From Lytechinus pictus (lineage: Eukaryota), in contig NC_087246.1 in the NCBI RefSeq assembly GCF_037042905.1, forward strand, positions 35,836,001-35,900,000: 64,000 nucleotides of DNA, read 5' to 3'. Shown piece after piece: positions 5,993-57,866 of the stretch. Position 1 is the stretch's first letter. Every line of letters starts with the position of its first letter. The notes beneath the pieces are model-generated. The model saw only the letters and a program-made list of their open reading frames with translations, did no database searches and was not told the origin of the DNA. The position numbers and the translations under genes are program-made.

Positions 5993-6860
5993 TCAGTCTG
6001 TTTCACTAGATTCAACGGATGACGATTCGGCAGAAACAGACGAAGAACGTCTGAAACGAGCTGCAAGTAACGAAAAGAAAAATGATAATGATTATTAACA
6101 TACGAAGAAACTCCTAAGATTAATCTGTATGCATATCAAATAAACATGAATATATTCTCTATATTCAAGGATAACATATATTTAGTTCGAAATACTTTAT
6201 ATCGGTTTGTGTTTTATAGTTTGGCAAAGGAGAAATCATAATAACCTAAATATTTTGTTTGATATGTGAATAAAGAAGACAAGAAAATTGTAAAAGAGAG
6301 AGAGAGAATTAAAATACTAATAATTATGATGGAAATTCTAATCAAAACTTTCAGTGAGTTCAACTATGATAAACGGAGAAGAGGAACAATCTATAAGATG
6401 ATCCTTTGCATGCGTGTCATAAATACATTTGGACGATATCACAAAGTGTCAACAAAAGTATTTTTAAAAATCTTTACATATGGCATTAGGAGATTTGAAG
6501 ATACTTACCTGTAGAGGAACAGTCGACAACTTCAAGGCAAATTTTTTCCAAGATTTCACAGGCATCAGCGCTATTCTGCTCTCCTTCCTCTACCAGACAC
6601 ACCATGTTATTCTCAGCTCCATCAAACAATTCCTGTTCAGTAAGAGTAAGAACTCCTCTTAGATCTTCTTCACACGTGTCAACCACCTGCCTGTATCTGT
6701 CACATAGGGCTTCGAACTGTGCAGTGCGATCGGTAGTTTGTGCTAAAAATAAAGGAAATTATCAAATCATGATTTTGCGTTGAATTTACCAGTAACACAA
6801 ATAAATAACCAGTGGAGATTTAAGCCAAAAAATTGAGGTGGCAAGGTATGGCGTATCGGG

Positions 6861-6909
<49 letters not shown>

Positions 6910-8085
6910 GTTTCGAGCGAGCGAAGCGAGAGAGCAAGTGTCGTCATTTTTATTTTCAAAATCCTATTTTGTGATAGATTTTGACATAATATTTAAAAAA
7001 TAATATATTTCATCCTTCTCTCTTTCTTTCCTTTTTCTCTTGTTCGTAAAAAAATTGAGGGTAGCAAGCGTCCCAAGAACCCCCCCCCCCCCCCGTCTGT
7101 ACGCCACTGTAACAAACCTATGATTTATATTGCAATAATGATCTGCACCATCATGATAAAACCAATATTATTGCACCAAAATGAACAAATTGACAAGTTT
7201 TGCTGTGTAATGTGGAAAAAAATTTAACATTTCCCAAACATAGATGTATCATATATAAAAGTGATTTCAAAATGATCATGATATATACCCAAATGAGAAA
7301 TATATCTGCAAATTTCGATAAATCCCTCTTTTTCTCTATTGATTTTTAAATGAAAAATTAAAAAATATATACCTTTGACTGCCATCGCAAAAACTGCAAC
7401 GAGACACAAACAAACGCAAAATGTTTTTACCTGTAGAAAGGAAAATAAATAAAATATTCAATTCATTTGTATACTCTAACATCATAGCTTTAAATGATAA
7501 CGTAAATATTCAAAGAATTAATTGAAATTTAGGTAAGACTGTCTTTTTGGAAACAACTTTGAGGATCTTTGCGGGTCAATTCCCTTGTTCATTAAAATTA
7601 GACTTTATTTCTTTACAAATAGATCTCGGAAGAGAAATAACACCCCCCCCCCAAAAAAAAAAAAAGGGAAAGGAATAAATAAATAAAATAAGTAATAAAA
7701 TAAAACAGGATGAAGAGTGATAATTAAATGGAATAAAAAAAGATATAACATAAAAAAATATAAAAATTGTAAAATTGAAGGAATTCAAAGATTATAAACC
7801 TAATGATTAAAATAAATGAAATTTAATAGCATATACCATTGGCGGACAAAAACATAAAGGTATACCCCGAATTGTGAGATCATAAAAAACCTCTGTTTTG
7901 GTATAATACAGATATCTATTTCTATTTTACTGTCAACATTTTCAGAAAGAATTCAAAATCCATGTTATCAAATTCATTCTTTTTTTCTTATTATATCCAG
8001 TTAAAACTAAATCAGGTTTACGCAGTTTAAACAGTATCTGCTGGAATAATTGGAAAAATAATATTGTACTTACCGATTGAGCCAT
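5993..8085 (-). CDS. Secreted six-Cys acidic protein precursor, copy 1 (subtype B), 123 aa, 4 coding exons
   Basis: complement join(8074..8085,7373..7430,6509..6742,5993..6060); GT-AG introns, phases 0/1/1; MAQSVKTFCVCLCLVAVFAMAVKA-QTTDRTAQFEALCDRYRQVVDTCEEDLRGVLTLTEQELFDGAENNMVCLVEEGEQNSADACEILEKICLEVVDCSSTARFRR-SSSVSAESSSVESSETD*. Confidence 0.92.
6810..7109. mobile_element. MITE with CAGTGG(CG) termini in intron 2, shared by subtypes A and B
   Basis: CAGTGGAGATT...GTACGCCACTG; counterparts near 11485, 15633, 24097, 39116 and 56911; partly deleted in copies 5, 7 and 8. Confidence 0.65.
6865..6906. repeat. (TA)n microsatellite in intron 2 of copy 1
   Basis: About 21 TA units; much shorter in paralogs. 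Confidence 0.95.
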
Positions 8086-10562: not shown

Positions 10563-10569
10563 TATAAAA
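10563..10569 (+). promoter_or_regulatory. TATA box of copy 2; equivalents occur at all complete copies
   Basis: aatacTATAAAAggg about 90-100 nt upstream of the ATG in copies 1,2,4,5,6,7,8,9, followed 20-30 nt later by initiator-like TCATT/TCACT. Confidence 0.8.
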
Positions 10570-10661
10570 GGGAGAAAATATCTTCATTAATCACTCATTC
10601 ATCAGCGTTCTAAATAACACTTTATTTTCTCAAAACGCTCGGCTCAGCAAAACTCCTGAAA

Positions 10662-12507
10662 ATGGCTCAATCGGTAAGTAGAACATTACTTTGAAAAATT
10701 ATTCCAGCAGAAACAATTAAAACTGCAAACAGTTATAGTTTTAGATTTTAAGGCATTTTAAAGAGATATTGAAAGAAAAAAGAGCAAATTTGATGACATG
10801 GATTTTAATTTATTTGTGAATTTGTTTGTATACGTAAATAGAAATCTGCATTATACACCGAATGTTTATCTTGGATATCACAAGTCGGGGTATATCGTTT
10901 TGTTTCAGTCCCCCGATCCGCCAATGGTATATGCTATTAAATTCCTTTATATTAAGCATTAGGATTATAAACTTTATATTTATTGATTTTTTACAATTTT
11001 TATATTTTTTTTCATGCTATATCAATTTCATTCCATTTAATTATCACTCTTATTCCTGTTTAGTTTTTTTCCAATTTCAATTAATTCTTAAAATGTTCAT
11101 GTTATTATTTAAACTATTCTTTTAGAGTATACAAATGATTTTTTTTTTCTTCAATTTTTCCCTTTTACAGGTAAAAGCACTTTGCGTTTGTTTGTGTATC
11201 GTTGCATTTTTTGCGATGGGAGTGAAAGGTATGGATTTTTTTGTATATTTTTCAATTAAAAATTGATAGAGAAAAAGAGGCATTTATCGAAATTTGCAGA
11301 TATCTTTCTCATTTGGGTGCTGTTTCTATCGTGACTTTCATCATGCATGATACATCTATTTTGAGGAATGACATAAAACTTTTGATATTGTTAGGACAGC
11401 GAGTTTCCACATTACACAACAAAACATGTCAATTTGTTTATTTAGGTGCAATAATGTTTTTTTAATTGGGATATATGATTGTTACAGTGGCGTACAGGGG
11501 GGGGGGGGGTCTTGAGCACTTGCCCCCAAATAATCAAGACCAAGAAAATAAAGAGAAAAGGAAATAATTAAAGGGAAAGAGAGGAGGGTAAAATAAATTA
11601 TTTTCTGAATATTATCTCAAAATTTATGCTCGCTTGCTTCGCTCTCTCTAAGCTTTTTTAAAAACAAATTTTCCCGATACCCCATATCTTGCCCCCTCAA
11701 AACGTTTGGCTCAATATGCCACTAGTTTGTTATGTGTTTTACAGAAAAACTTTATGAAAAGTCACGATTTGATAATTTATTTCATTTCTAGCCCAAACTA
11801 CCGATCGCACTGCACAGTTCGAAGCCCTATGTGACAGATACAGGCTGGTGGTTGACACGTGTGAAGAAGACCTAAGAGGACTTCTTACATCTACTGAACA
11901 GTCCCTGTTCGATGAAGCTGAGAATGATATGGTGTGTCTGGTAGAGGAAGGAGAGCAGAATAGGGCTGAGGCCTGTGAAATCTTAGGAAAAATTTGCCTT
12001 GAAGTTGTTGACTGTTCCTCTACAGGTAAGTAATATCTCCAAATCCCCCAATGCATTTTATAAAGATTTTTTGCTGCTTTTTGTTGACACTATCGTCCAA
12101 AAATATTTATGATATGTAATCCAAAAGATCCCTCTTCCTATATTAGATTGTTGCTCTTCTCGGTTTATCATAGTTAAACTCAATGACATTTTCAAGTGTT
12201 TTAATTCTCTTTACACAATTTCTGGTCTTCATTATTCACATTTCAAACAAACGTAAGTCGTTATCATAACCTCTCCCTTTTCCAAAAGATAAAAACAAAC
12301 CGATATACAATATTTCAAATAAATTATCGTTAAATATCCATGTTTACATGATATGCATTCCGATTAATCATTGGAGTTTCTTCGTATGTAAATAATGCTT
12401 GCAATTATATTTCATTACTTGCAGCTCGTTTTAGACGTTCTTCGTCTGTCTCTGCCGAATCGTCATCCGTTGAATCTAGTGAAACAGAATCTAGTGAAAC
12501 AGACTGA
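10662..12507 (+). CDS. Secreted six-Cys acidic protein precursor, copy 2 (subtype A), 128 aa
   Basis: join(10662..10673,11171..11228,11792..12025,12425..12507); MAQSVKALCVCLCIVAFFAMGVKA-QTTDRTAQFEALCDRYRLVVDTCEEDLRGLLTSTEQSLFDEAENDMVCLVEEGEQNRAEACEILGKICLEVVDCSSTARFRR-SSSVSAESSSVESSETESSETD*; TATAAAA at 10563, AATAAA at 12668. Confidence 0.93.
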
Positions 12508-13267
12508 GGAGGTCATCGCAGGCCAACGGTTGAAACACAGTATCCCATATTTGCCTCGAGTGTCGTAATGTGTATGAAGATCACTTCTTCATTCGACTTT
12601 TATATAAGTAACTATTTAAGATGCTGCTTGTTTCTTTTTATGTGTCTTCCATTCACTAATATATTTAAATAAAATTCTAACCAAATATTGAAAAATCTAA
12701 TAATTTGCCTCAGTTATTCATAATTTTGATTATTTTTGGTAGGATTGTTGGAGAAAGGTAATTGGAAGTTTAAAATTTGAAAAAAAAATACGTGAGTAAA
12801 CATAATTCATTGAGAGAAAATAATGAAAAAAATATTGTGTAAATAAGGTTGATTATGAGACCCCTTCCACGTGAACTAGGGGAGATACCAGGGGGTTCCA
12901 TATAAATATGCTCCTTATATCATGTTGGAGAATAGTGCAAGAAATGAAATGATAATGGGAATATCTTTCGACACCTAGAGTCAAGATGCTAGAGAGCCTA
13001 GATAAAAAGACAGTGTATGTGGGTGCGTGCACCTGTGTATAAGGGTGAGAGAGAGAGAGGGGGGAGAGGTACATGAGAATTAAAAGAGGGGGATGAAATA
13101 TAAATAATTTGAGAGACAACTTATATAATTATAGAGTAAGGGGGTGGTAGTGAGTCAGGTATATGTGCGAGAGAGAGAGAGCTGAAATAATACAGAACGA
13201 AGAGTGAAAAACCAATACATGAGTTTGCAATAGGTGGTGTGTACTATTTGTTTTTGAGAGTGTGTAC

Positions 13268-15318: not shown

Positions 15319-16641
15319 GTAAAAGCACTCTGCGTTTGTTTGTGTATCGTTGCATTTTTTGCATTGGGATTAAAAGGTATGGATTTTTTAGTATATTTTT
15401 CAATTAAAAATTGATAGAGAAAAAGAGGCATTTATCGAAATTTGCAAATATATTTCTCATTTGGGTACTGTTTCTATCGTGACTTTCATCATGCATGATA
15501 CATCTATTTTGAGGAATGACATAAAACTTTTGATATTGTTAGGACAGCGAGTTTCCACATTACACAACAAAACATGTCAATTTGTTTATTTAGGTGCAAT
15601 AATGTTTGTTTAATTGGGATATATGATTGTTACAGTGGCGTACAGGGGGGGTCTTGGGGCACTTGCCCCCAAATAATCAAGACCAAGAAAATAAAAAGAG
15701 AAAAGGAAATAATTAAAGGGAAAGAGAGGAGGGTAAAATATATTATTTTCTGAATATTATCTCAAAATTTATGCTCGCTTGCTTCGCTCTCTCTAAGCTT
15801 TTTTAAAAACAAATTTTCCCGATACCCCATATCTTGCCCCCTCAAAACGTTTGGCTCAATATGCCACTAGTTTGTTATGTGTTTTACAAAAAAACTTTAC
15901 GAAAAGTCACGATTTGATAATTTCTTTCATTTCTAGCCCAAACTACCGATCGCACTGCACAGTTCGAAGCCCTATGTGACAGATACAGGCTGGTGGTTGA
16001 CACGTGTGAAGAAGACCTAAGAGGACTTCTTACATCTACTGAACAGAACCTGTTCGATGAAGCTGAGAATGATATGGTGTGTCTGCTAGAGGAAGGAGAG
16101 CAGAATAGCGCTGATGCCTGTGAAATCTTGGAAAAAATTTGCCTTGAAGTTGTCGACTGTTCCTATACAGGTAAGTAATATCTTCAAATCCCCTAATGCC
16201 ATTTATAAAGATTTTTGCTGCTTTCGTTGACACTCTGTGACATCGTCCAAAAATATTTATGATATGTTATGCAAAAGATCCCTCTTCCTATATTCGATTG
16301 CTGCTCTTCTCAGTTTATCATAGCTAAACTCAATGACATTTTCAAGTGTTTTAATTCTCTTACACAATTTCTGGTCTTCATTATTCACATTTCAAACAAA
16401 CGTAAGTCGTTATCATAATCTCCCCCTTTCCCAAAAGATAAAAACAAACCGATATACAATATTTCAAAGATATTATCGTTAAATATCCACGTTTACATGA
16501 TATGCATTCCGATTAATCATTGGAGTTTCTTCGTATGTTAATAATGATTGCAATTATATTTCATTACTTGCAGCTCGTTTTAGACGTTCTTCGTCTGTCT
16601 CTGCCGAATCGTCATCCGTTGAATCTAGTGAAACAGACTGA
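15319..16641 (+). pseudogene. Copy 3 (subtype A): exons 2-4 intact, exon 1 and promoter deleted
   Basis: Exons 15319..15376, 15937..16170 and 16574..16641 are open with good splice sites. Homology to intron 1 begins abruptly near 15061, directly after MITE sequence, with no ATGGCTCAATCG exon or TATA upstream. Confidence 0.85.
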
Positions 16642-23317: not shown

Positions 23318-25356
23318 TCAGTCTGTTTCACTTGATTCAACGGATGACGATTCGGCAGAGACAGACGAAGAACGTCTGAAACGAGCTGCAAGTAACGAAA
23401 TATAATTACATTCATTATTAACATACGAAGAAACTCGTATGATTAATCGGAATACATATCATGCAAATATTGATATTTACGGATTATTTCTAATTACTTT
23501 GAAATATCATAGATGGTTTTTTTGGAAAATGGAGAGATTATGATAACTTTCGTTTGTTTTATTATGTGGATAATGAAGACCAGAAATTGCATAAAGAGAA
23601 TGAAAACCTAGATTTTCATTACAACTTTCATTGAGTTTAACTATGAAAAACTGAGAAGAGGAACAATCTAATATAAGAAGAGGGATACTTTGCATTACAT
23701 AAATAAATAAATGTTTTGGACGATATCACAAAGTGTCAACAAAAGTATTTAAAAAAATCTTTATATATGGCATTAGGAGATTTGAAGATACTTACCTGTA
23801 GAGGAACAGTCGACAACTTGAAGGCAAATTTTTTCCAAGATTTCACAGGCATCAGCGCTATTCTGCTCTCCTTCCTCTACCAGACACACCATATTATTCT
23901 CAGCTCCATCAAACAATTCCTGTTCAGTAAGAGTAAGAAGTCCTCTTAGGTCTTCTTCACACGTGTCAACCACCTGCCTGTATCTGTCACATAGGGCTTT
24001 GAACTGTGCAGTGCGATCGGTAGTTTGTGCTAAAAATGAAGGAATTTATAAAATCATGATTTTTCGTTGAATTTACCAGTAACACAAATAAATAACCAGT
24101 GGAGATTTAAGCCAAAAAATTGAGGTGGCAAAATATGGCGTATCGGGAATTTTTTTTTATATATATAAAAGTTTCGAGCGAGCGAAGCCATGGAAGCGAG
24201 AGAGCAAAAGTGTCGTCATTTTTATTTTCAAAATCCTATTTTGTGATAGATTTTGACATAATATTAAGAAAATAATATATTTCATCCTTCTCTCTTTCTT
24301 TCCTTTCCTTTTTGTCTTGTTCGTAAAAAATTGAGGGTGCCAAGCGCCCCCAATACCCCCCCCCGTCTGTACGCCACTGTAACAAACCTATGATTTATAT
24401 TGTGCAATAATGATCTGCGTCATCATGATAAATCCAAAATTATTGCACCAAAATGAACAATTTGACAAGTTTTGTTGTGTAATGTGGAAAAAATATTAAC
24501 ATCCCCCAAACATACATGTATCATATATAAAAGCGATTTCAAAATGATCATGATATATACCCAAATGAGAAATATATCTGCAAATTTCGATAAATCCCTC
24601 TTTTTCTCTATTGATTTTTAAATGAAAAATTAAAAAAAATATATACCTTTGACTGCCATCGCAAAAACTGCAACGAGACACAAACAAACGCAGAATGTTT
24701 TTACCTGTAGAAAGGAAAATAAATAAAATATTCAATTCATTTGTATACTCTAACATCATAGCTTTAAATGATAACGTAAATAATCAAAGAATTAATTGAA
24801 ATTTAGGTAAGACTGTCTTTTTGGAAACAACTTTAAGGATCTTTTCGGGTCAATTCCCTTGTTCATTAAAATTAGACTTTATTTCTTTACAAATAGATCT
24901 CGGAAGAAAAATAACACCCCCCCCCCAAAAAAAAAAAAGGAAAGGAATAAATAAATAAAATAAGTAATAAAATAAAACAGGATGAAGAGTGATAATTAAA
25001 TGGAATAAAAAAGATATAACATAAAAAAATAAAAAAATTGTAAAATTGAAGGAATTCAAAGATTATAAACCTAATGATTAAAATAAATGGAATTTAATAG
25101 CATATACCATTGGCGGACAAAACCATAAAGGTATACCCCGAATTGTGAGATCATAAAAAACCTCTGTTTTGGTATAATACAGATATCTATTTCTATTTTA
25201 CTGTCAACATTTTCAGAAAGAATTCAAAATCCATGTCATCAAATTCATTCTTTTTTTCTTATTATATCCAGTTAAAACTAAATCAGGTTTACGCAGTTTA
25301 AACAGTTTCTGCTGGAATAATTGGAAAAATAATATTGTACTTACCGATTGAGCCAT
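23318..25356 (-). CDS. Secreted six-Cys acidic protein precursor, copy 4 (subtype B), 123 aa
   Basis: complement join(25345..25356,24647..24704,23796..24029,23318..23385); intact frame; variants QFKAL and ICLQVVDC. Confidence 0.92.
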
Positions 25357-25737: not shown

Positions 25738-25774
<37 letters not shown>

Positions 25775-27834: not shown

Positions 27835-30800
27835 ATGGCTCAATCGGTAAGTATAACATTACTTTTTAAAATTATTCCAGCAGAAAAAAAATTAAGACTG
27901 CAAAACAGTTATAGTTAGCTTTTAAGGCATTCTAAAGATATATTGAGAAGAAAAAAAATTTGATGACATGGATTTCAATTTATTTGTAAATTTGTTTATA
28001 TACGTAAATAGAAATCTGCATTATACAACGAATATTTATATTGGATCTTACAATTCGGGGTATATCTCTTTGTTTTATTCCCCCGATCCGCCAATGGTGT
28101 ATATATGCTATCAAATTCCATTTATATTAAGCATTAGGATTATAAAATTTATTTTTATTCATTTTTTACAATTTTTATATTCTTTTCATGCTATTTTTGT
28201 CATATCTATTTAATTATCACTCCTATTCCTTTTTTGATTTTCAAATTTCAATCAATTCTTAAAATGTTCATGTTATCATTTAAACTATGATTTAAGAGTT
28301 TACAAATGAATTCGTTTTTTTTCCCCTTTTACAGGTAAAAACACTCTGCGTTTGTCTATGTCTCATTGCATTTTTTGCAATGGGAGTGAAAGGTATGGAT
28401 ATTTGTATTTTTTCAATTAAAAATGTATAGAGAAAAAGAGGCATTTATCGAAGTTTGCCGATATCTTTGTCACTATACTGCTTCTATCGTGACTTTCATC
28501 ATGTTTGATACTTCTATTTTGGAGGGATGACATATAACTTTTCATTAAAAAAAGAGAAAATGAAAGAAAGGGAAAGAGAGGAAGGTGAAATATGATATTA
28601 TTTTTTTAATATTATGTCAATTTTTTGGCTAGCTTGCTTCGCTCGCTCGAAACTTCTTTAATTTTTTTTCCCGATGCACCATATCTTGCCCCTCAAAACG
28701 TTTGGCTAAATATGCCACTAGTTTGTTATGTGTTTTAGTGATAAATTCTACGGAAAGTCACGATTTGATAATTTCTTTCATTTCTAGCCCAAACTACCGA
28801 TCGCACTGCACAGTTCGAAGCCCTATGTGACAGATACAGGCTGGTGGTTGACACGTGTGAAGAAGACCTAAGAGGACTTCTTACATCTACTGAACAAAAC
28901 CTGTTCGATGAAGCTGAGAATAGTATGGTGTGTCTGCTAGAGGAAGGAGAGCAGAATAGCGCTCATGCCTGTGAAATCTTGGAAAAAATTTGCCTTGAAG
29001 CTGTCGACTGTTCCTCTACAGGTAAGTAATATCTCCAAATCCCCCAATGCATTTTATAAAGATTTTTTGCTGCTTTTTGTTGACACTATCGTCCAAAAAT
29101 ATTTATGATATGTAATCCAAAAGATCCCTCTTCCTATATTAGATTGTTGCTCTTCTCATTTTATCATAGTTAAACTCAATGGCCCGTATTCTGATAGCAG
29201 GTTTAACTTAACCCTAGTCTAAAGTTAACCCTGGTTTAACTAAACCTCCTCTAAACCTCACCTCTGGTCTAAGTGTAGTTTAATTATTTTGGTATTCTGA
29301 TAGCCAGGTTTAACTAAACCTGGGTTAAACCCGGGTTTAAATTCTTTTTGGAAATAATAATCCTCTTTTAACCAAGACTAGCACCTTTTTGGTAAATTAG
29401 TGCTGCAGGGATGACTGCAACAAAGTTGAAAAAATGTCACTAAAGTTGTTTTTTCTTAAAAATTTGGATTTTATGGAAACTAATTACAACTATTGTAGTG
29501 AAAGAAAAGCATTCATCACCCATATATGGTAAGAAATTTTCATTCAGATTATCTTTATATTTTTTAATTACTAAAACATTTCAATCCCAAACCGAGTGAC
29601 CTGCATAGTTTTGTGTGTATCAGTCCCATTGATTGCTTTTCATGTTTGTCAAAATCTAAATTGAATAGATTTACCTCACCCACTCTAGACTAGAGTCTAG
29701 ACTCTAGTCCTATAGATCTAAAACAATAAGTTAAGAGGTCGACATCTTTATTCTAACTTTATGTAAGGGGAAATTTTTGTAACTTTTGAGAGTAGTCTTG
29801 GGTCTAACATTAGGCCTAGGCTAGTATAGTTAGATCTAGCTTAGGCCCAATTGTTTGGAGGAGAATTGAACATTGTTTTGACTTTTTTTACTTTCCTGAA
29901 GCAAACCGTAGTCTAGTGGAGCAACCGAGACTGAAGCTACATTATACATATTTATAGTATTGGTCTAGGCCTAGAACATCATTCAGGAATTAGGCTGGCT
30001 TAGCCTTGGGACAGGGATAGATATAGATCTATATTCTAACCTTATTCTTAGTTAGATTTGGAATCTAGTAGAATAGATCTGATTTGTCTTAGACAAAAAG
30101 CTTCAGTCTCTGTATTGTTCCGCTGAGTCTATGATGAGTATGACAGTCTACGTTGCCGTTGGCCTCTCTCACCAAGGCAATGTGATATGACAATAAAATG
30201 TCAGAATTTTTTCAATAAATCCCCAGAAACGACGGTTATTCCTGTCTACAGTGTTAGATCTGACTATCGCTATGCATTGCCATTGCTTGCCAAGTAACTA
30301 GGCCTGGCTAAATGACATCTCTCTACTCCTGTTTTAGGTCCATATCTGTTTCTTTGAAGAGTTTTTATTTTATTTAAATATTTTTGGGGACTTGTTTAGG
30401 TTTCCAGGTCCAGGACTAAAAAACAGGCCTAAACCTAGACCAACAACAGCTTAGTCTTGACTAGACTAGGCCAGGCCTAGATTTATGTAAGAATTTAGAT
30501 CTAGGCCTTACGTTAGTCTGTGCTATCTAGTCTACTGACTTACTGTATGATCTAGAATCTCTAACGCTGGCCTAGTTCTAGACTAAATAACTTAGACCCT
30601 ATCTAGATCTAGAACTAGATCTGTATCAATCTAGGTCTACATGTAATAGGTCTAGATCTAGAGATTTGTAGACTCTCAATTTAGATTCTAAATCGAAAAA
30701 TAGTAAATGTAGGCTAGTCTACAGTAGATCTACTCATCTAACCTTAGGCATGACAAAAGAAGTAGGCTAGAGATCTAACGGATTATTACTAGATCTAAAG

Positions 30801-32942
30801 AATCTAGATCTAGGCCTAGATCTAAAGCTAGGGACTGTAGTTCGAGATCTAGAGGTCTAGCACCCCCCTTAAAACTAGAACTAAGCCTACAGCTACATGT
30901 AGTTCTCTATGTAGCCAAACAACAGTTAGCATTGACTATTGTCTTAATCTCAGGCTTATTTTGGTGTGTGTAGTTACCATACAAACACATATTTTGATGA
31001 ATGAGAAAATGTGTCTTGCAGATTATTTTACCTCAAAACCTATGTGTTCTAAATTTCATGAGCATAGGCCTATGTCATAAAATGAAGAAGTTCAATCCAC
31101 GAGATGTGTTTACACATTTATTGATTTAATATGATGTTACCATGGCAACAAAGTTTCCAACACACACAAATATATGTCTTGCAGATCTATACCTCAAAAC
31201 CAATGTGTGAGCCGACTTTTATAAGAATTGGTTGAAAAATGAAAACTAATGAAGGAGTTCAAACCGCAAGATTTTCACCTAATTTCATTATGTAATATGT
31301 TGTTACCATGGCAACATGATTTCTGATACACCCAAATATATGTCTTGCAGATCTATACCTCAAAACCAATGTGTGAGCCAACTTTTATAAGAATTGGTTG
31401 AAAAATGAAAACTAATGAAGGAGTTCGAACTACAAAATTTTCACCTTATTTTCGTTATATAATATGTTGTTACCATGGCAACACGATTCTGATACAGGCA
31501 AAAATATGTCAGACATCTTCACCTCAACATTAATGTATGTGCCAAATTTTTAAGAGAATTGACCAGTTGGAAACTGATAAAGTAGTTCAAATCACAAGAT
31601 TTTCATCTAATTTTTTATATTTGATTTGTTACCATGGCAACATGATTTTTTTTAATAAAGACATAAAATATTTTTTGCACATCTTCACATCAAGACTAAT
31701 GTTTGTACCACATTTCATGAGAATTGGTTAAAACTTAGGAAGTAGTTGGAATTGCAAGATTTTTACATAGTTTTTGCCATAATATACCGTTTCCATGGCA
31801 ACACAATTTCCAACACATGCAAAAATGTGTCTTGCAAATCTTCACCTCAAGACTTATGTCTGTGCCAAATATCATGAGAAATGGTTTGAAAATTATAAAG
31901 TAATTATAAAACCACAAGTTTTTCACCTAATTTTCGATATTTGATATGTTACCATGGCAACGCGATTTTTTATATACTTTAGGCATAGAATATGTTTTGC
32001 ACATCTTCACATTAAGACTAATGTATGTGCCAAATTTCACAAGAATTGGTTAAAAACTGAGGAAGTAGTTGGAACAGCAAGATTTATGCTTAGTTTTTGT
32101 CATACTATACCGTTACCATGGCAACACAATTTCCGACACATGCAAAAATGAGTCTTGCACATCTTTACCTCAAAATCAATGTGTTAGCCAACTTTCTTGA
32201 GAATTGGTAGAAAACTGATTAAGTATTTTAAACGGCAAAATTTTGAACCATAATATACTGTTACCATGGCAACACAATTTCCGAAAAAGGGGAAAAAAAT
32301 TCTTACACCTCCTTACCTTGAGACCAAAGTGTGTTCCAAATTTCATGAGAATCTGTTAAAAACTGAGGAAGTAGCTCGAAATGCAATATAGGCATAAATT
32401 CTAAAAAATTGTTGGCCATGATTTGTTGGATTTAAACGAGGCTTAAACTACCCCCTGCGCGAGTTTAACTTTTTGAGGATTTATTACCACACTTAGACCA
32501 GGGTTAACTTAAACCTTGCTATCGGAATACGAAATTTAAACCTAGGTTTAAATATGGCAGTTTATTACCACACTTAGACTAGGGTTAAGTTAAACCACGC
32601 TATCAGAATACGGGCCAATGACATTTTCAAGTGTTTTAATTCTCTTTACACAATTTCTGGTCTTCATTATTCACATTTCAAACAAACGTAAGTCGTTATC
32701 ATAACCTCTCCCTTTTCCAAAAGATAAAAACAAACCGATATACAATATTTCAAAGAAATTATCGTTAAATATCCATGTTTACATGATATGCATTCCGATT
32801 AATCATTGGAGTTTCTTCGTATGTTAATAATTATTGCAATTATATTTCATTACTTGCAGCTCGTTTTAGACGTTCTTCGTCTGTCTCTGCCGAATCGTCA
32901 TCCGTTGAATCTAGTGAAACAGAATCTAGTGAAACAGACTGA
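27835..32942 (+). CDS. Secreted six-Cys acidic protein precursor, copy 5 (subtype A), 128 aa; 3.4-kb transposon in intron 3
   Basis: join(27835..27846,28335..28392,28788..29021,32860..32942); signal MAQSVKTLCVCLCLIAFFAMGVKA; variants NSAHAC and CLEAVDC. Confidence 0.9.
29181..32616. mobile_element. 3.4-kb composite non-autonomous DNA transposon (PIF/Harbinger-like) in intron 3 of copy 5
   Basis: aat|GGCCCGTATTCTGATAGC...GCTATCAGAATACGGGCC|aat; empty site caatgacatt in copies 2, 3 and 7; no transposase ORF seen. Confidence 0.92.
31000..32400. repeat. Tandem array of about 160-bp units, each with GTTACCATGGCAAC
   Basis: Motif near 31135, 31302, 31469, 31628, 31789, 31948, 32112 and 32260; related units at about 3280-3540. 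Confidence 0.85.
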
Positions 32943-38318: not shown

Positions 38319-40350
38319 TCAGTCTGTTTCACTAGACATGCTAGATTCAACGGATGACGATTCGGCAGAGACAGACGAAGAACGTCTAAAACGAGCTGCA
38401 AGTAACGAAATATAATTACATTCATTATTAACATACGAAGAAACTCGTATGATTAATCGAAATACTTATTATGTAAACATAAATATTTAAGGATAATTCT
38501 AATTACTTTGAAATATTATATATCGGTTTGTTTTTATATTTTGGAAAATGAAAAGATTATGATAACTTTCGTTTGTTTGATATGTGGATAAAGAAGACCA
38601 GAAATTGCATAAAGAGAATTAAAACACTAGATTTTCATTACAACTTTCATTGAGTTTAACTATGAAAAACTGAGAAGAGGAACAATCTAATATAAGAAGA
38701 AGGATACTTTGCATTACATAAATAAATAAATGTTTTGGACGATATCACACAGTGTCAACAAAAGTACAAAAAAATATTTTAAATGGCATTAGGAGATTTG
38801 AAGATATTACTTACCTGTAGAGGAACAGTCGACAACTTCAAGGCAAATTTTTTCCAAGATTTCACAGGCATAAGCGCTATTCTGCTCTCCTTCCTCTACC
38901 AGACACACCATATTATTCTCAGCTCCATCAAACAATTCCTGTTCAGTAAGGGTAAGGCGTCCTCTTAGATCTTCTTCACACGTGTCAACCACCTGCCTGT
39001 ATCTGTCACATAGGGCTTCGAACTGTGCAGTGCGATCGGTAGTTTGGGCTACAAATCAAGGAAATTATCAAATCGTGATTTTTTGTTGAATTTACTAGTA
39101 ACACAAATGAATAACCAGTGGAGCAATAAGCCCAAAAAATTGAGGTGGCAAGAGATGGCGTATCGGAAAAATTTATACATATAAAAGCGAGCGTGCAAAA
39201 ATGTCGTCATTTTTATTTTCAAAATCCTATTTTGTGATAGATTTTGACATGATATTTAGAAAATAATATATTTCATTCTTCTCTCTTTCTTTCCTTTCCT
39301 TTTTGTCTTGTTCGTAAAAAAAATTGAGGGTAGCAAGCGCCCAAGAACCCCCCCCCCCCCCGTCTATACGCCACTGTAACAAACCTATGATTTATATTGT
39401 GCAATAATGCTCTGCACCATCATGATAAAACCAAAATTATTGCACCAAAATGAACAAATTGACAAGTTTTGTTGTGTAATGTGGAAAAAATATTAACATT
39501 CACCAAACATACATGTATCATATATAGAAGCGATTTCAAAATGATCATGATATATACCCAAATGAAAAATATATCTGCAAATTTCGATAAATCCCTCTTT
39601 TTCTCTATTTATTTTTAAATGAAAAATTAAAGAAATATATACCTTTGACTGCCATCGCAAAAACTACAACGAGACACAAACAAACGCAGAATGTTTTTAC
39701 CTGTAGAAAGGAAAATAAATAAAATATTCAATTAATTTGTATACTCTAACATCATAGCTTTAAATGATAACGTAAATAATCAAAGAATTAATTGAAATTT
39801 AGGTAAGACTGTCTTTTTGGAAACAACTTTAAGGATCTTTTCGGGTCAATTCCCTTGTTCATTAAAATTAGACTTTATTTCTTTACATATAGATCTCGCA
39901 AGAGAAATAACACCCCCCCCCCCCAAAAAAAAAAAAGGGAAAGGAATAAATAAATAAAATAAGTAATAGAATAAAACAGGATGAAGTGTGATAATTAAAT
40001 GGAATTAAAAAAAGATATAACATAAAAAAAATATAATAATTGTAAAATTAAGGACTTCAAAGATTATAAACCTAATGATTAAAATAAATGGAATTTAATA
40101 GCATATACCATTGGCGGACAAAAACACAAAGGTATACCCCGACTTGTGAGATCGTATAAACCTCTGCTTTGGTATGATATATATATATCTATTTCTATTT
40201 CACTGTAAACACTATCAGAAAGAAATTAAAATCCATGTCATCAAATTCGTTCTTGTTTTCTAATTGTATCCATAATATCAGATTTACACAGTTAGAACAG
40301 TCTCTGCTGGAATAATTTGAAAATAATATTGTACTTACCGATTGAGCCAT
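38319..40350 (-). CDS. Secreted six-Cys acidic protein precursor, copy 6 (subtype B), 126 aa
   Basis: complement join(40339..40350,39643..39700,38815..39048,38319..38395); variants LRGRLTL and NSAYAC; in-frame 9-nt insertion gives tail VESSMSSETD*. Confidence 0.92.
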
Positions 40351-42457: not shown

Positions 42458-44081
42458 ATGGCTCAATCGGTAAGTATAACATTACTTTTTAAAATTATTC
42501 CAGCAGAAAAAATATTAAAACTGCAAAACAGTTATAGTTAGCTTTTAAGGCATTCTAAAGATATATTGAGAATTTTAATTTATTTGTGAATTTGTTTATA
42601 TACGTAAATAGAAATCTGCATTATACACCGACTATTTATCTTGGATCTTACAATTCGGGGTATATCTCTTTGTTTTATTCCCCCGATCCGCCAATGGTGT
42701 ATGCTATCAAATTCCATTTATATTAAGCATTAGGATTATAAACTTTATTTTTATTCATTTTTTACAATTTTTATTTTCTTTTCATGCTATATATATTTAA
42801 TTCCATTTAATTATCACTCCTATTCCATTTTTTATTTTCTAATTTCAATCAATTCTTAAAATGTTCATGTTATCATTTAAACAAATGAATTCATTTTTTT
42901 TCTTATTTTTTCCCCCTTTTACAGGTAAAAACACTTCGCGTTTGTCTGTGTCTCATTGCATTTTTTGCAATGGAAGTGAAAGGTATAGATTTTTGTATTT
43001 TTTCAATTAAAAATTTATAGAGAAAAAGAGGCATTTATCGAAGTTTGCAGATATCTTTGTCACTTGGGTACTGTTTCTATCATGACTTTCATCATGTTCG
43101 ATACCTCTATTTTGGAGGGATGACATATAACTTTTCATTAAAAGAGAGAAAATTAAAGAAAGAGAAAGAGAGGAAGGTGAAATATGATATTATCTTCTGA
43201 ATATTATGTCAATTTTTTTGCTAGCTTGCTTCGCTCGAAACTTCTTTATTTTTTTCCCGATGCACCATATCTTGCCCCTCAAAACGTTTGGCTAAATATG
43301 CCACTAGTTTTTTTACTGATAAATTCTACGAAAAGTCACGATTTGATAATTTCTTTCATTTCTAGCCCAAACTACCGATCGCACTGCACAGTTCGAAGCC
43401 CTATGTGACAGATACATGGAGGTGGTTGACACGTGTGAAGAAGACCTAAGAAGACTTCTAACATCTACTGAACAGAACCTGTTCGATGAAGCTGAATATA
43501 GTATGGTGTGTCTGGTAGAGGAAGGAGAGCAGAATAGCGCTGATGCCTGTGAAATCTTAGGAAAAATTTGCCTTGAAGTTGTTGACTGTTCCTCTACAGG
43601 TAAGTAATATCTCCAAATCCCCCAATGCATTTTATAACAATTTTTTGCTGCTTTTTGTTGACACTATCGTCCAAAAATATTTATGATATGTAATCCAAAA
43701 GATCCCTCTTCCTATATTAGATTGTTGCTCTTCTCAGTTTATCATAGTTAAACTCAATGACATTTTCAAGTGTTTTAATTCTCTTTACACAATTTCTGGT
43801 CTTCATTATTCACATTTCAAACAAACGTAAGTCGTTATCATAACCTCTCCCTTTTCCAAAAGATAAAAACAAACCGATATACAATATTTCAAATAAATTA
43901 TCGTTAAATGTCCATGTTTACATGATATGCATTCCGATTAATCATTGGAGTTTCTTCGTATGTTAATAATGCTTGCAATTATATTTCATTACTTGCAGCT
44001 CGTTTTAGACGTTCTTCGTCTGTCTCTGCCGAATCAACATCCGTTGAATCTAGTGAAACAGAATCTAGTGAAACAGACTGA
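42458..44081 (+). CDS. Secreted six-Cys acidic protein precursor, copy 7 (subtype A), 128 aa
   Basis: join(42458..42469,42925..42982,43366..43599,43999..44081); signal MAQSVKTLRVCLCLIAFFAMEVKA; variants YMEVV, LRRLL and AEYSM. Confidence 0.9.
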
Positions 44082-49676: not shown

Positions 49677-49721
<45 letters not shown>

Positions 49722-50766: not shown

Positions 50767-52690
50767 TCAGTCTGTTTCACTTGATTCAACGGATGACGAT
50801 TCGGCAGAGACAGACGAAGAACGTCTAAAACGAGCTGCAAGTAACGAAATATAATTACATTCATTATTAACATACGAAGAAACTCGTATGATTAATCGGA
50901 ATACATATCATGTAAACATTGATATTTAAGGATAATTTCTAATTACTTTGAAATATCATAGATCGTTTTTTTTTTTTTTTTTGGAAAATGGAGAGATTAT
51001 GATAACTTTCGTTTGTTTGATATGTGAATGAAGACCAGAAATTGTATGAAGAGAATTAAAACACTAAATTTTTATTAAAACTTTGATAAACTATGATAAA
51101 CTAAGAAGAGGAACAATCTAATATAAGAAGGGTGATAGTTTGCATTACATAGACAAATCGGGAGATAAATATTTTGGACGATATCACAGAGTGTCAACAA
51201 AAGTAGCAACAAATTTTTATAAATGGTATAAGGGGATTTGAAGATATTACTTACCTGTAGAGGAACAGTCGACAACTTCAAGGCAAATTTTTTCCAAGAT
51301 TTCACAGGCATCAGCGCTATTCTGCTCTCCTTCCTCTACCAGACACACCATACTATTCTCAGCTTCATCGAACAGGTTCTGTTCAGTAGATGTAAGAAGT
51401 CCTCTTAGGTCTTCTTCACACGTGTCAACCACCTCCCTGTATCTGTCACATAGGGCTTCGAACTGTGCAGTGCGATCGGTAGTTTGGGCTAGAAATGAAA
51501 GAAATTATCAAATCGTGACTTTTCGTAGAATTTATCAGTAAAACACATAACAAACTAGTGGCATATTGAGCCAAACGTTGAGGGGGCAAGATATGGGGTA
51601 TCGGGAACATTTGTTTTAAAAAAAGCTTAGAGAGAGCGAAGCAAGCGAGTATAAATTTTGAGATAATATTCAGAAAATAATATATTTCACCCTCCTCTCT
51701 TTCCCTTTAATTATTTCCTTTTCTCTTTTTATTTTCTTGGTCTTGATTATTTGGGGGCAAGTGCCCCAAGACCCCCCCTGTATGCAACAATCATATATTC
51801 CAATTAAACAAAAATTATTGCACCTAAATAAACAAATTGACATGTTTTGTTGTGTAATGTGGAAACTCGCTGTCCAAGCTAGCAAAAAAATTTACATAAT
51901 ATTCAGAAAATAATATCATATTTCACCTTCTCTCTTTCCCTTTCTTTCATTTTCTCTTTTTTAATGAAAAGTTATATGTCATCCCTCAAAAATAGAGGTA
52001 TCAAACATGATGAAAGTCATGATAGAAACAGTACCCAAGTGACAAAAATATCTGCAAACTTCGATAAATGCCTCTTTTTCTCTATAAATATTTAATTTAA
52101 AAAAATACAAAAATCCATACCTTTCACTCCCTTTGCAAAAAATGCAATGAGACACAAACAAACGCAGAATATTTTTACCTGTAAAAGGGGGAAAATAAGA
52201 AAAAAAAATAATTAATTTGTTAACTCTTAAATCATAGTTTAAATGATAACATGAACATTTTAGGAATTGATTGAAATTGGAAAATAAAAAAAGGAATAGG
52301 AGTGATAATTTAATGGAATTAAATAGAAATAGCATGAAAAGAATATAAAAATTTAAAAAATTAATAAAATAAAGTTTATAACCCTAATGCTTAATATAAA
52401 TGGAATTTGATAGCGTACACCATTGGCGGATCGGGGAAATAAAACAAAGAGATATACCCCGAATTGTAAGATCCAAGATAAATATTCGGTGTATAATGCA
52501 GATTTCTATTTACGTAAATAAACAAATTCACAAATAAATCAAAATCCATGTCATCAAATTTGTTTTTGTTTTCTTCTCAATATATCTTTAGAATGCCTTA
52601 AAAGCTAATACTATAATTGTTTTGCAGTTTTAATTTTTTTTCTGCTGGAATAATTTTAAAAAGTAATGTTATACTTACCGATTGAGCCAT
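50767..52690 (-). CDS. Secreted six-Cys acidic protein precursor, copy 8 (A/B chimera), 123 aa
   Basis: complement join(52679..52690,52121..52178,51255..51488,50767..50834); promoter through exon 3 is A-type (LTSTEQNLFDEAENS); exon 4 and 3' flank are B-type. Confidence 0.9.
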
Positions 52691-53109: not shown

Positions 53110-53141
<32 letters not shown>

Positions 53142-54070: not shown

Positions 54071-55937
54071 TTAATACATAAAAGTTAACAAGTGGGTATA
54101 CTGGATTATTTTTGTTATTGCATTGATCAAAGACAGATCCAAAACTGCTAAAAGCATTATACATTGCACTATCCTTAGAGCTAGATTGTGTGCATAATCC
54201 AGTCAAAAGTGACATCTAGTACCATCAGTGGTGTAACGAGTGGCACGTGCCCCCCCCCCCCCCCCCAAAAAAAAAAAAAAAAAAAAAAATTATAGTAAAA
54301 ATAATAATAATAAATAAATAAATAAAAAGAATAAAAGATTTTTAAAAAATATTGAATTAAAATTGAAATTGAAATTGAAACTTTATTTATTACCGCAATC
54401 TTCATAAAAAACATACAAATCAAGAAGTATAAATATTTCAATAAAATACATTATAACAAAAGTGAGTATATTTAAGAATAGTGGAAGGATCACTGAAAAG
54501 TTACAAGGAACTTATAAATTAGTGATCCTGAAATTAACAGGTAAAATAAAGTAAATTAAAATAAAGTAAAATTAAATAAAGTAAAATAAAATTAAAACGG
54601 GGGAAAGGGAGAGAAAGACCGGGAAAGAAAAAGATTAGCTTGGGGCCTATGTGTTCACTCCTCCCGGAGCACGCATTGCCTGTTAAATTCCATACATATT
54701 TCCCTTCCAAGGGGATTAAATGGCGCTTAAAACATTCCGTTTTCAAATCGATATCAAATGTTTCTCCTCGCGCTTCGAACTCTCGTTATTTTATTCAGTG
54801 ACATACGCATCTTTTTTATGATTACTAAGTGCTTAAAAATGTTCCCTTTTTAGGATTGAATATAAAAAAAAAATCAGCTCGCGCTTCGTGCCCGCCTTTG
54901 TTTATTATAAAGATTAATTTCTAAAGACAGCCCTTTCAAAATGTCAAAATTTTTAAAAAAAATTTCAGCTTACGCTTCGCGCTCGAGTAATTTGATTAGT
55001 GAAACACCGTGATCTTCATGAATTCTTAAACAGTCCTTAAAATGTGTCCCTTTTCGAATCCTGTATAATTTTATCTTCTTCTTCTTCTTCTGGAAACAGT
55101 ACAGTCCACCGTCTGGTGTATTGTCGTACTGGTGATCATTTATATCAAATAGTTTTATTCATAATACTATGAATTGATATTCATTTATCATACTGTTGCT
55201 TTATAAGGAGGAACGTACACATAAAACGTAAAGTAATTGACATCGATATAAGAAATAAAAGATTATGGTCATCTTAACCGCGGCTCTGACACACCATCCG
55301 TTAAATCATCATTGATTCTAAAAGAAAAAGAACGACATAAGACCTCTTTGTATATTCCCATTTCTTCATAATGATTCATAATAGACTAAAACACCAGTCA
55401 ATTCGCTGTATTTTCAAATGAAAACATGGAAACAAGAAATCTGTCGCCAAATGACTCTCATTGTTTCGTTTAGTGTCAAAGGTAAAGGAAACAAGATAAT
55501 TAATAGACCGTGTCAAGTACATTTAGGTGAGAGAGAAAGAGAAAGAGAGGGGGGTCCTTGGATCTCAATACAAACGTATTAGTTGGTCGTTTACTCGTTT
55601 TGTTTGTTTATTCTTTTTATTTTAACCTTTCAAATGGTTAACTTCCTCTTAATGGTATAGATATTAATTACGCATATAATTAGAAACGAAAATCGTAATG
55701 ACAGTTTTACCTATCACAAACAAATTACGCAAAATGTCCTTTTGTTCAAATCTTAAACTGTCATAATTATCATATCATATTGTAATCTCGCAATCGTGAA
55801 AGACAAACATTTCCTACCTAAATTTTGATTATGTCGAAATACTATAAAAGGGGAAAAATACAGTCATTAATCACTCACCCATCAGCATTCGAAATACCTT
55901 TTTTTTTCAAAGCTCTTGACTCAGCAAAACTCCTGAA

Positions 55938-57866
55938 ATGGCTCAATCGGTAAGTACAATCTTATTTTTCCAATTATTCCAGCAGAAACTGTTTAAACTG
56001 CGTAAACCTGATTTAGTTTTAACTGGATATAATAAGAAAAAAAGAATGAATTTGATGACATGGATTTTGAATTCTTTCTGAAAATGTTGACAGTGAAATA
56101 GAAATAGATATCTGTATTATACCAAAACAGAGGTTTTTTATGATCTCACAATTCGGGGTATACCTTTATGGTTTTGTCCGCCAATGGTATATGCTATTAA
56201 ATTCCATTTATTTTAATCATTAGGTTTATAATCTTTGAATTCCTTCAATTTTACAATTTTTATATTTTTTATGTTATATCTTTTTTTATTCCATTCAATT
56301 ATCACTCTTCATCCTGTTTTATTTTATTACTTATTTTGCTCATTTATTCCTTTCCCTTTTTTGGGGGTTGTTATTTCTCTTCCGAGATCTATTTGTAAAG
56401 AAATAAAGTCTAATTTTAATGAACAAGGGAACTGACCCGAAAAGATCCTTAAAGTTGTTTCCAAAAAGACAGTCTTACCTAAATTTCAATTAATTCTTTG
56501 ATTATTTACGTTATCATTTAAACTATGATGTTAGTCAGTTAGAGTATACAAATGAATTGAATATTTTATTTATTTTCCTTTCTACAGGTAAAAACATTCT
56601 GCGTTTGTTTGTGTCTCGTTGCAGTTTTTGCGATGGCAGTCAAAGGTATATATTTTTTTAATTTTTCATTTAAAAATCAATAGAGAAAAAGAGGGATTTA
56701 TCGAAATTTGCAGATATATTTCTCATTTGGGTATATATCATGATCAGTTTGAAATCGCTTTTATATATGATACATGTATGTTTGGGGGATGTTAATTTTT
56801 TTTCCACATTACACAACAAAACTTGTAAATTTGTTCATTTTGGTGCAATAATTTTGGTTTTATCATGATGGTGCAGATCATTATTGCACAATATAAATCA
56901 TAGGTTTGTTACAGTGGCGTACAGACGGGGGGGGGTTCTTGGAACGCTTGCTACCCTCATTTTTTTTACGAACAAGACAAAAAGGAAAGGAAAGAAAGAG
57001 AGTTGGATGAAATATATTATTTTCTTAATATTATGTCAAAATCTATCACAAAATAGGAATTTGAGAATAAAAATGACGACACTTTTGCTCTCTCGCTTCG
57101 CTCGCTCGAAACTTTTATATATATAAAAAAAATTCCCGATACGCCATATCTTGCCACCTCAATTTTTTTGGCTTAAATCTCCACTGGTTATTTATTTGTG
57201 TTACTGGTAAATTCAACGAAAAATCATGATTTGATAATTTCCTTCATTTTTAGCACAAACTACCGATCGCACTGCACAGTTTGAAGCCCTATGTGACAGA
57301 TACAGGCAGGTGGTTGACACGTGTGAAGAAGACCTAAGAGGACTTCTTACTCTTACTGAACAGGAATTGTTTGATGGAACTGAGAATAATATGGTGTGTC
57401 TGGTAAAGGAAGGAGAACAGAATAGCGCTGAAGCCTGTGAAATCTTGGAAAAAATTTGCCTTGAAGTTGTCGACTGTTCCTCTACAGGTAAGTATCTTCA
57501 AATCTCCTAATGCCATATATAACGATTTTTTTAAGTACTTTTGTTGACACTCTGTGATATCGTCCAAAACATTTATTTATTTATGTAATGCAAAATATCC
57601 CTCTTCTTAATAAAACAAACGAAAGTTATCATAATCTCTCCATTTTCCGAAATATGAAAAAAACGATCTATGATATTTCAAAGTAATTAGACATTATCCT
57701 TAAATATATATCAATGTTTACATGATATGTATTTCGATTAATCATAAGAGTTTCTTCGTATGTTAATAATGAATGTAATTATATTTCGTTACTTGCAGCT
57801 CGTTTTAGACGTTCTTCGTCTGTCTCTGCCGAATCGTCATCCGTTGAATCAAGTGAAACAGACTGA
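55938..57866 (+). CDS. Secreted six-Cys acidic protein precursor, copy 9 (subtype B, in inverted block), 123 aa
   Basis: join(55938..55949,56588..56645,57254..57487,57799..57866); variants DGTENN, CLVKEG and NSAEAC. Confidence 0.92.

Follow-up and report, generated by a model that had tools for sequence, protein, structure and literature searches.

Saposin-like proteins are secreted, helical proteins of about 80 aa, in which six Cys form three disulfides. Strongylocins and centrocins, which are restricted to sea urchins, have a signal peptide and processed pro-pieces; they are cationic, and the strongylocins contain six Cys. Among the secretory calcium-binding phosphoproteins, the ASARM peptide of MEPE and the N terminus of statherin are acidic, Ser-rich substrates of Fam20C, a Golgi kinase with the consensus S-x-E. 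It is common for a lineage to have its own arrays of small, Cys-rich secreted proteins. The locus compared here with these systems belongs to Lytechinus pictus, a sea urchin; these animals serve as models in work on biomineralisation, innate immunity and fertilisation.

Gene models and existing annotation

Mismatch-tolerant scans and splicing were applied to a stretch of 64,000 nt (the window). Nine genes of the four-exon type were located between 5993, the final base of the copy 1 stop codon (minus strand), and 57866, the final base of the copy 9 stop codon. Eight of these have four coding exons and copy 3 has exons 2–4 only, exactly as an earlier note on this DNA had claimed. The same note spoke of at least nine genes; four further intact copies flank the window just outside it, which makes a 13-gene cluster. 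Exon 1 is present in 12 of the 13 copies, and the open frame is intact in all of them. These direct observations support the six-Cys genes as real, intact and spliced. The copies in the window are as follows.

Copy 1: 5993..8085, minus strand; subtype A, 123 aa, splice sites GT/AG, frame intact; coding exon 1 8074-8085, exon 2 7373-7430, exon 3 6509-6742, coding exon 4 5993-6060; TATA box at -94, poly(A) signal at +184
Copy 2: 10662..12507, plus strand; subtype B, 128 aa, with junction-carrying contigs and RefSeq model P0012; coding exon 1 10662-10673, exon 2 11171-11228, exon 3 11792-12025, coding exon 4 12425-12507
Copy 3: 15319..16641, plus strand; subtype B, exons 2–4 only, in tandem behind copy 2; exon 2 15319-15376, exon 3 15937-16170, coding exon 4 16574-16641
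Copy 4: 23318..25356, minus strand; subtype A, 123 aa, from scans and splicing; coding exon 1 25345-25356, exon 2 24647-24704, exon 3 23796-24029, coding exon 4 23318-23385
Copy 5: 27835..32942, plus strand; subtype B, 128 aa, protein equal to RefSeq P0015 by sequence comparison; coding exon 1 27835-27846, exon 2 28335-28392, exon 3 28788-29021, coding exon 4 32860-32942
Transposon: 29182..32615, no strand assigned; non-autonomous DNA transposon of 3.43 kb within copy 5 intron 3
Copy 6: 38319..40350, minus strand; subtype A, 126 aa, from scans and splicing; coding exon 1 40339-40350, exon 2 39643-39700, exon 3 38815-39048, coding exon 4 38319-38395
Copy 7: 42458..44081, plus strand; subtype B, 128 aa, from scans and splicing; coding exon 1 42458-42469, exon 2 42925-42982, exon 3 43366-43599, coding exon 4 43999-44081
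Copy 8: 50767..52690, minus strand; 123 aa, identical to RefSeq P0002 (LOC129280730); coding exon 1 52679-52690, exon 2 52121-52178, exon 3 51255-51488, coding exon 4 50767-50834
Copy 9: 55938..57866, plus strand; subtype A, 123 aa, identical to RefSeq P0005 (LOC129280720); coding exon 1 55938-55949, exon 2 56588-56645, exon 3 57254-57487, coding exon 4 57799-57866

Every intron of the nine copies runs from GT to AG, and the splice sites are thus invariant, as had been claimed. The same had been said of the exon lengths. This was true of exons 1, 2 and 3, with 12, 58 and 234 coding nt, but not of exon 4 (68-83 nt): in-frame variation of repeats in the tail gives it 68, 77 or 83 coding nt. Of the eight complete copies, seven have a TATA box 93-99 nt 5' of the ATG, and copy 6 has the variant TATAAAGG at this position; a poly(A) signal is found 139-184 nt past the stop codon in all copies. 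For copy 3, neither exon 1 nor a promoter was found: upstream of exon 2 its likeness to copy 2 ends after about 260 nt, and exon 2 no longer has its internal ATG. Judged by intron identities, copy 8 is a mosaic, its intron 2 being of type B and its intron 3 of type A.

Intron 3 of copy 5 measures 3838 nt. Alignment with the corresponding introns of copies 2 and 7 gave the borders of its transposon. The element ends in terminal inverted repeats (arms 29176-29222 and 32574-32621), is flanked by a 5-bp target-site duplication, and contains tandem repeats of about 165 bp (array 31127-32173).

The family had been presented as hidden and unrecognised, which it is not. RefSeq already carries its members under the label "uncharacterized protein" for three sea-urchin species: L. 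pictus (LOC129280549/571/709/720/730 and LOC129272279/288), L. variegatus (LOC121409571/574) and Strongylocentrotus purpuratus (LOC105444233/105443314/115926552/115918147). Four of our spliced models match RefSeq, those of copies 8 and 9 over their whole length. The RefSeq model of copy 2 begins at an internal Met and so misses exon 1 at 10662-10673, and the models starting MGVKA or MEVKA (among them LOC129272288 and both L. variegatus models) are without a signal peptide. Function, family name and publication are all absent from the RefSeq records. As a discovery the array is modest, because such lineage-specific arrays are common and the genes were annotated already. Being abundant, conserved, predicted to be secreted and entirely uncharacterised, and carrying a processing site of its own, the family is nevertheless a reasonable candidate for any of the fields of biomineralisation, immunity and fertilisation. 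Presumably the early gene sets on which skeletal proteomics drew did not contain it.

Precursor protein, conservation and transcription

The precursors of 123-128 aa comprise a predicted signal peptide, an acidic six-Cys domain of 82 aa ending in RFRR, and a Ser/Glu tail of 17-22 aa. The N-terminal sequence is signal-peptide-like, in agreement with the proposed cleavage site ending V-K-A. All six Cys are encoded within exon 3, and their spacing, C-x9-C-x24-C-x12-C-x6-C-x5-C, is the same in 9/9 window copies. RFRR, likewise described earlier as invariant and as an R-x-R-R convertase consensus, is followed by Ser in 13/13 copies. Our recount for copy 2 from Gln25 to RFRR gave 82 residues with 19 D/E versus 9 K/R, the very figures of the earlier note, and the pI of the domain is about 4.2. 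This composition, together with AlphaFold models that are helical at low confidence (pLDDT 47 and 55), is consistent with the acidic and probably helical domain that had been proposed. In the model, RFRR comes after the last Cys, in an exposed, non-helical stretch of low pLDDT.

Within the array, the exons have a mean pairwise identity of 92.7% with zero indels. Mean identity is 82% for intron 2 (24% gap columns) and 86% for intron 3 (14%); these gaps and the insertion in copy 5 bear out the statement that introns gather indels and transposons. In the Cys domain the pN/pS ratio was 0.41, and in the tail 0.21. For the RFRR codons pN was 0 and pS 0.17; the motif stays the same in all copies although its codons carry synonymous changes, and selection acts on the coding sequence.

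A profile of the family matched an S. purpuratus member with an E-value of 7.7e-40. Like those of L. pictus, S. purpuratus members have a signal peptide, six Cys, R-[FY]-R-R, a tail and four exons. In the S. purpuratus loci L007 and L008, exon 1 has 12 coding nt, and the next three exons encode the signal peptide, the six Cys, and ARFRR plus the tail; the intron phases agree with those in L. pictus. The L. variegatus homologues have this exon structure too. The tail is the best-conserved part between the genera, 16/17 of its residues being kept, while the Cys domain is about 55% identical. A more divergent sea-urchin-like contig encodes ARFRRSSSVES followed by a Ser/Thr/Glu/Asn tail, and homologues occur on three genomic or metagenomic contigs. 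Our searches found none outside sea urchins, and the family is so far sea-urchin-specific.

Contigs of the runs X1 and X2 span the copy 2 joints 11228>11792 and 12025>12425, both GT..AG. These runs are of low depth (about 5-9) and, by our guess, probably RNA. The contig rows covered the exon 2-3 and exon 3-4 joints, the exon 1-2 joint being absent from the rows shown. Most intronic and intergenic bins were without depth in X1 and X2, and the contigs therefore appear to be transcripts and not genomic DNA. When about 6% of the reads of two raw RNA-seq runs were sampled, exon coverage was zero; expression is therefore restricted or low. The genes are probably transcribed.

The raw runs, as well as copy 3 with neither exon 1 nor promoter, would suit a non-functional or decaying repeat array whose frames are open only through recent duplication. 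Such an array is hardly credible. It is largely refuted by the 13 intact frames with indel-free exons beside gapped introns, by pN/pS below 1 and the invariance of RFRR, by homologues of the same structure in another sea-urchin family, and by the spliced contigs.

Putative processing and possible roles

The best explanation, which we regard as reasonably probable, is a tandemly amplified family of compact, four-exon, TATA-driven genes encoding a secreted prepro-protein that is processed by signal peptidase and a convertase. The steps, including secretion itself, are predicted from sequence. A signal peptide of 24 aa (MAQS plus exon 2) would be removed after V-K-A, and the new N-terminal Gln may cyclise to pyroglutamate. 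The six Cys probably pair as three disulfides in the predicted-helical domain. A furin-type proprotein convertase would cleave after R-F-R-R, before Ser, and release the Ser/Glu-rich tail. At least five convertase P-domain loci are present in the L. pictus genome, and RFRR fits the R-x-[K/R]-R pattern of convertase substrates and lies, as their sites do, in an accessible part of a secretory protein. Each tail has three or four S-x-E motifs and is probably phosphorylated, because S-x-E is the Fam20C consensus. The motifs lie in a secretory-pathway protein, as in Fam20C substrates, and domain matches revealed three Fam20-type kinase loci in the genome.

We infer cleavage from the consensus only, and the strong conservation of RFRR with the adjoining SSSV would equally fit one continuous functional motif. 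RFRR might then stay uncleaved and be kept because it forms, for instance, a basic patch or binding site; the product would be one secreted acidic protein, about 100 aa long and with the Ser/Glu tail still attached. We consider this unlikely, though the most serious challenge to the processing scheme: R-x-R-R followed by Ser is an optimal furin-type site, its stretch past the last Cys is exposed, and RFRR or RYRR is kept in every homologue with exon 4.

As to the role of a cleaved precursor, our favoured guess, a tentative one, is that the extracellular acidic protein and the phosphopeptide work as a pair in binding calcium or calcite. On this view the tail might be likened to the ASARM peptides released from vertebrate matrix proteins. 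A search of supplements to the S. purpuratus tooth and shell phosphoproteome paper (PMC2830187) did not turn it up, which argues weakly against a mineral role.

Somewhat more doubtful than calcium binding is a role in humoral defence, in which the array would have been amplified and diversified for variant secreted disulfide-rich immune effectors, with the tail as a pro-piece. Other expanded sea-urchin immune families offer a parallel to the thirteen clustered paralogues with their mosaic histories, 37/117 aligned codons are variable among the copies, and the Cys domain diverges fast between genera. In some young pairs dN/dS approaches or exceeds 1 (copies 2 and 7, 1.02; copies 3 and 8, 2.09), and in some pairs exons are more diverged than introns (93.9% exon identity vs 98.7% for intron 3 in copies 2 and 7). 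The high values, however, rest on 2-5 synonymous differences, and pooled pN/pS of 0.41-0.47 indicates no overall diversifying selection. Moreover, the domain is strongly anionic, and similarity to known antimicrobial families was not found.

Slightly less likely again would be a new sea-urchin-specific fold within a new kind of two-part precursor, the acidic helical domain with its three disulfides and a freed, heavily phosphorylated Ser/Glu peptide, both from one gene, jointly controlling calcite deposition or acting as a water-borne cue, with 13-copy dosage and tail-length variants tuning the output.

We find it improbable that the domain is a hormone-, cytokine- or pheromone-like ligand released by prohormone processing. 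The layout would suit a prohormone (signal peptide, N-terminal Gln, conserved R-x-R-R and an acidic, spacer-like tail), expression appears restricted, and the domain, small and by its model helical and disulfide-stabilised, might be compared with the small acidic helical three-disulfide water-borne pheromones. Thirteen near-identical copies would, however, be unusual for a hormone gene, and the tail is conserved better than the supposed ligand. No neuropeptide, hormone or cytokine family matched, the helical-cytokine matches in the fold search being at background (Z of about 4).

Comparison with known families

In agreement with the earlier statement that the family could not be assigned, we could match it to no Pfam family, solved structure or known fold, and no paper on it was found. 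In UniRef the S. purpuratus member has been named automatically as Syntaxin-5 N-terminal Sly1p-binding domain-containing protein (Pfam PF11416), which is misleading. Where the mature domain begins, 12 residues (DRT..F..LC) resemble the 23-position profile; in 2 of 8 members scanned (both S. purpuratus, alignment A2) they scored 18 bits, the cut-off being 16.6, and the L. pictus members gave no match. The Syntaxin-5 peptide is the cytosolic N terminus of a tail-anchored SNARE, whereas the stretch here follows a signal peptide and would be lumenal or extracellular. The family protein has neither a SNARE domain nor a membrane anchor or transmembrane region, and we rejected this identity as a chance match. 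The insulin/relaxin superfamily was also rejected, there being no adjacent CC pair and no Pfam match.

Saposin-like proteins resemble the family in size, six Cys, and its predicted secretion and helices. Saposins, however, have close Cys pairs at both ends, in contrast to the spacing of 9, 24, 12, 6 and 5 found here. The SapB profile gave no match even at E <= 10, and no saposin was among the Foldseek or VIA-align matches listed for a model with a pLDDT of only 55. With strongylocins and centrocins the family shares restriction to sea urchins, a signal peptide, putatively processed pro-pieces and, for strongylocins, six Cys. These peptides are cationic and much shorter, unlike the anionic 82-aa domain, and sequence similarity to them appeared in none of the searches. 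The ASARM peptide and statherin differ from the tail in that there is no sequence homology and the cut site here is a convertase consensus; the likeness is in the design, a short Ser/Glu-rich peptide with repeated S-x-E, C-terminal here, that a protease site marks off from the remainder of a secreted protein.

Gene structure of the nine copies

On alternating strands, the six-frame ORF list of the window held nine copies of a Cys- and Glu-rich ORF of 61–66 residues; an earlier note had described exon 3 fragments in the ORF track. A motif scan with C-x9-C-x24-C-x12-C-x6-C-x5-C also gave nine occurrences, and downstream of each the reading frame ran on into ARFRR, a Ser/Glu-rich tail and a stop codon. 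When the exons of copy 2 were used as queries in mismatch-tolerant scans, exon 1 was located in eight copies, and exons 2, 3 and 4 in nine each. The spliced open frames were 123–128 residues long (119 for copy 3, which is without exon 1), with GT..AG at every junction. The nine copies and the gene models proposed earlier were found to be accurate, and the limits given for the family, 5993 and 57866, coincide exactly with the outermost stop codon on either side.

The coding part of exon 1 is an ATG followed by three codons (MAQS). Exon 2 (58 nt) encodes a hydrophobic core, exon 3 (234 nt) contains all six Cys, and exon 4 encodes A-RFRR plus a 17-, 20- or 22-residue tail. The invariance claimed for the family holds for the Cys spacing and RFRR, but not for the coding length of exon 4. 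Of the eight complete copies, seven have a TATAAAAG box 93–99 nt before the ATG, and in copy 6 its place is taken by TATAAAGG. A poly(A) signal lies 139–184 nt past the stop in every copy. From the positions of these two elements, an mRNA of about 0.6 kb is predicted.

The 13-gene array and its relatives

The exon 3 translation matched five Lytechinus pictus entries, all named "uncharacterized protein". The protein of copy 8 is identical to the RefSeq model P0002 (LOC129280730) and that of copy 9 to P0005 (LOC129280720); copy 5 is P0015. Copy 2 equals P0012 (LOC129272288), except that the model starts at an internal Met. Like P0012, the L. variegatus models P0013 and P0014 open with MGVKA or MEVKA, at a Met within exon 2, and so are without exon 1 and the signal peptide. 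Exon 1 of copy 2, though absent from P0012, is present at 10662–10673, preceded by a TATA box at a distance of 99 nt.

The window corresponds to positions 35836001–35900000 of an L. pictus chromosome. When the complete genome was searched in six frames with a family profile, 13 matches were obtained, all inside about 91 kb. Four of these genes lie just outside the window, and all four are intact. The 13-gene array is arranged head-to-head and tail-to-tail. The head-to-head spacer common to copies 1 and 2 carries a 187-bp tandem duplication (10122–10459). The tail-to-tail spacers at 18000–20000 and 36000–38000 have a G+C content of about 0.41, against 0.31–0.35, and contain short ORFs only.

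Cluster look-up added members from L. variegatus and S. purpuratus. The latter has a pair of genes that code for the same protein, lie 20 kb from each other and show the four-exon layout of L. pictus. In both, intron 2 contains a short additional piece similar to the beginning of exon 3 (...AQTTDRT...; 2748–2825 of locus L007 and 2604–2681 of locus L008), probably a partial exon duplication. Three further contigs carried more divergent members (about 41–44% identity in the domain); one has two tandem copies, and in another exon 4 reads ARFRRSSSVES, followed by a Ser/Thr/Glu/Asn tail. Exhaustive HMMER searching of 1.84 billion cluster representatives, which stand for about 15 billion proteins, yielded two true clusters and nothing else credible. 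Two low-complexity repeat proteins among the matches were rejected as members. Word-indexed protein searches added only sea-urchin or unassigned contigs. At this sensitivity the family appears confined to sea urchins; as the HMMER profile drew on L. pictus sequences alone, it could have missed very distant relatives.

Mean pairwise identity was 92.7% for the exons, with zero indels. For introns 2 and 3 it was 82% and 86%, with 24% and 14% gap columns. Among the 13 copies, pN/pS fell from 0.51 in the signal peptide to 0.41 in the Cys domain and 0.21 in the tail; RFRR had a pN of 0 despite a pS of 0.17. The array is more than chance and is under selection. For some recent pairs, exon divergence exceeded intron divergence, with pairwise dN/dS of about 1 or higher. 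Diversifying selection was not taken as proven, because only a handful of substitutions lie behind these values and some copies are mosaic.

Copy 8 (50767–52690) is such a mosaic, with a B-type intron 2, an A-type intron 3 and a short-form tail. Its intron 2 is 92–94% identical to those of subtype B copies and about 76% to those of subtype A. Its intron 3 shows 91–93% identity to that of copies 4, 6 and 9, all A-type, and about 86% identity to the B-type form. This pattern fits a breakpoint within intron 3, caused by inversion or recombination. Intron indels, as had been claimed, show in the gap columns, and one transposon insertion was found:

29182–32615, non-autonomous DNA transposon of 3.43 kb, in intron 3 of copy 5

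The element ends in inverted repeats of about 40 nt, is flanked by a target duplication of 5 bp and contains an array of tandem repeats of about 165 bp.

Transcription

Sampled exon 3 words were all present in X2, and 65% of them in X1, two runs of the same species that are flagged only as probable RNA. Aligned with 6720–12719, contigs from these runs showed two joints, one from 11228 to 11792 and one from 12025 to 12425. Each has GT..AG, and they coincide exactly with the predicted exon 2–3 and exon 3–4 boundaries of copy 2. The majority of intronic and intergenic bins were empty, and the depth was low (about 5–9). No exon 1–2 joint occurred among the contigs listed for this region; support for it is indirect, as it is included in RefSeq models and is kept in 12 of the 13 copies and in S. 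purpuratus. The raw RNA-seq runs X6 and X7 gave zero exon coverage at about 6% sampling, so that expression in those samples must be low or restricted.

One X1 contig (record 6) joined 12452–12607 to 11171–11226 and continued into exon 3. This joint connects a GT donor (TATAA|GTAAC, at 12607/12608) in the 3′ UTR of copy 2 back to position 11171, the acceptor of exon 2. It could be a back-splice, giving a circular RNA, or could reflect read-through splicing from one gene into exon 2 of a copy lying downstream in tandem. Copy 3, which has neither exon 1 nor a promoter of its own, lies behind copy 2, and the donor motif is found in copies 2, 3 and 7. Separately, pieces of 30–50 nt in introns and spacers (6958–7006, 9077–9120 and 11597–11627) had a very high word depth in the RNA contigs, reaching several hundred, and loose ends on either side. 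They probably stem, as fragments, from dispersed repeats that are transcribed elsewhere, and do not belong to these genes.

Family searches and predicted processing of the precursor

When the mature domain and eight family members were searched against Pfam (E <= 10), only scattered sub-threshold matches appeared besides Syntaxin-5_N. The latter, a 12-residue likeness in the S. purpuratus members and the only match over threshold, was rejected as chance, being topologically senseless behind a signal peptide; it explains the automatic UniRef name of these members. A sequence profile search of solved structures gave none below E = 0.24, and ESM Atlas feature searches gave zero usable neighbours. 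AlphaFold2 models showed three helices at low confidence (pLDDT 47 for the full precursor with 5 sequences, 55 for the mature domain with 16). With Foldseek against PDB and AFDB clusters, the best E values (0.9–1.9) were background, as were the best VIA-align Z of 4.7 and the helical cytokines at Z of about 4. The family was not mentioned in literature full text searched by database identifier, peptide and topic, and no matching peptide was found in the accessible part of the S. purpuratus tooth and shell phosphoproteome supplements (PMC2830187). HMMER, Pfam and the structure and fold searches gave no full-length match to a characterised family, in agreement with the earlier statement that the protein could not be assigned to one.

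The description of the family as hidden and unrecognised was overstated, because automated annotation already lists the genes in three species. What is new is descriptive: the full 13-gene array, the conservation of the convertase site and of the tail that follows it, the truncated or misnamed database entries, and the absence of any assignable family. The significance of the find is modest.

The processing scheme combines the sequence with established rules. MAQSVK, the hydrophobic core and G-V-K-A would form a signal peptide whose -3 and -1 positions hold small residues, and its removal would leave Gln at the new N-terminus. The 82-residue product up to RFRR has 17–20 D/E vs 8–9 K/R across copies (pI about 4.2), and is acidic as claimed. 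R-F-R-R followed by Ser is an optimal furin-type site. RFRR or RYRR is kept in every homologue having exon 4, and in the low-confidence AlphaFold2 model RFRR lies past the last Cys in a non-helical stretch. A convertase would cut after RFRR, ahead of the Ser. Each tail has three or four S-x-E motifs, and the L. pictus genome encodes convertases and Fam20-type kinases. Between Lytechinus and Strongylocentrotus, the tail is the best-conserved segment (16/17 residues, vs about 55% in the domain). The signal peptide, Gln end, acidity, RFRR, tail and processing machinery together favour a two-part secreted precursor, which would be split into an acidic domain rich in disulfides and an acidic peptide that could be phosphorylated. 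These products may have calcium- or mineral-related, defence or signalling roles.
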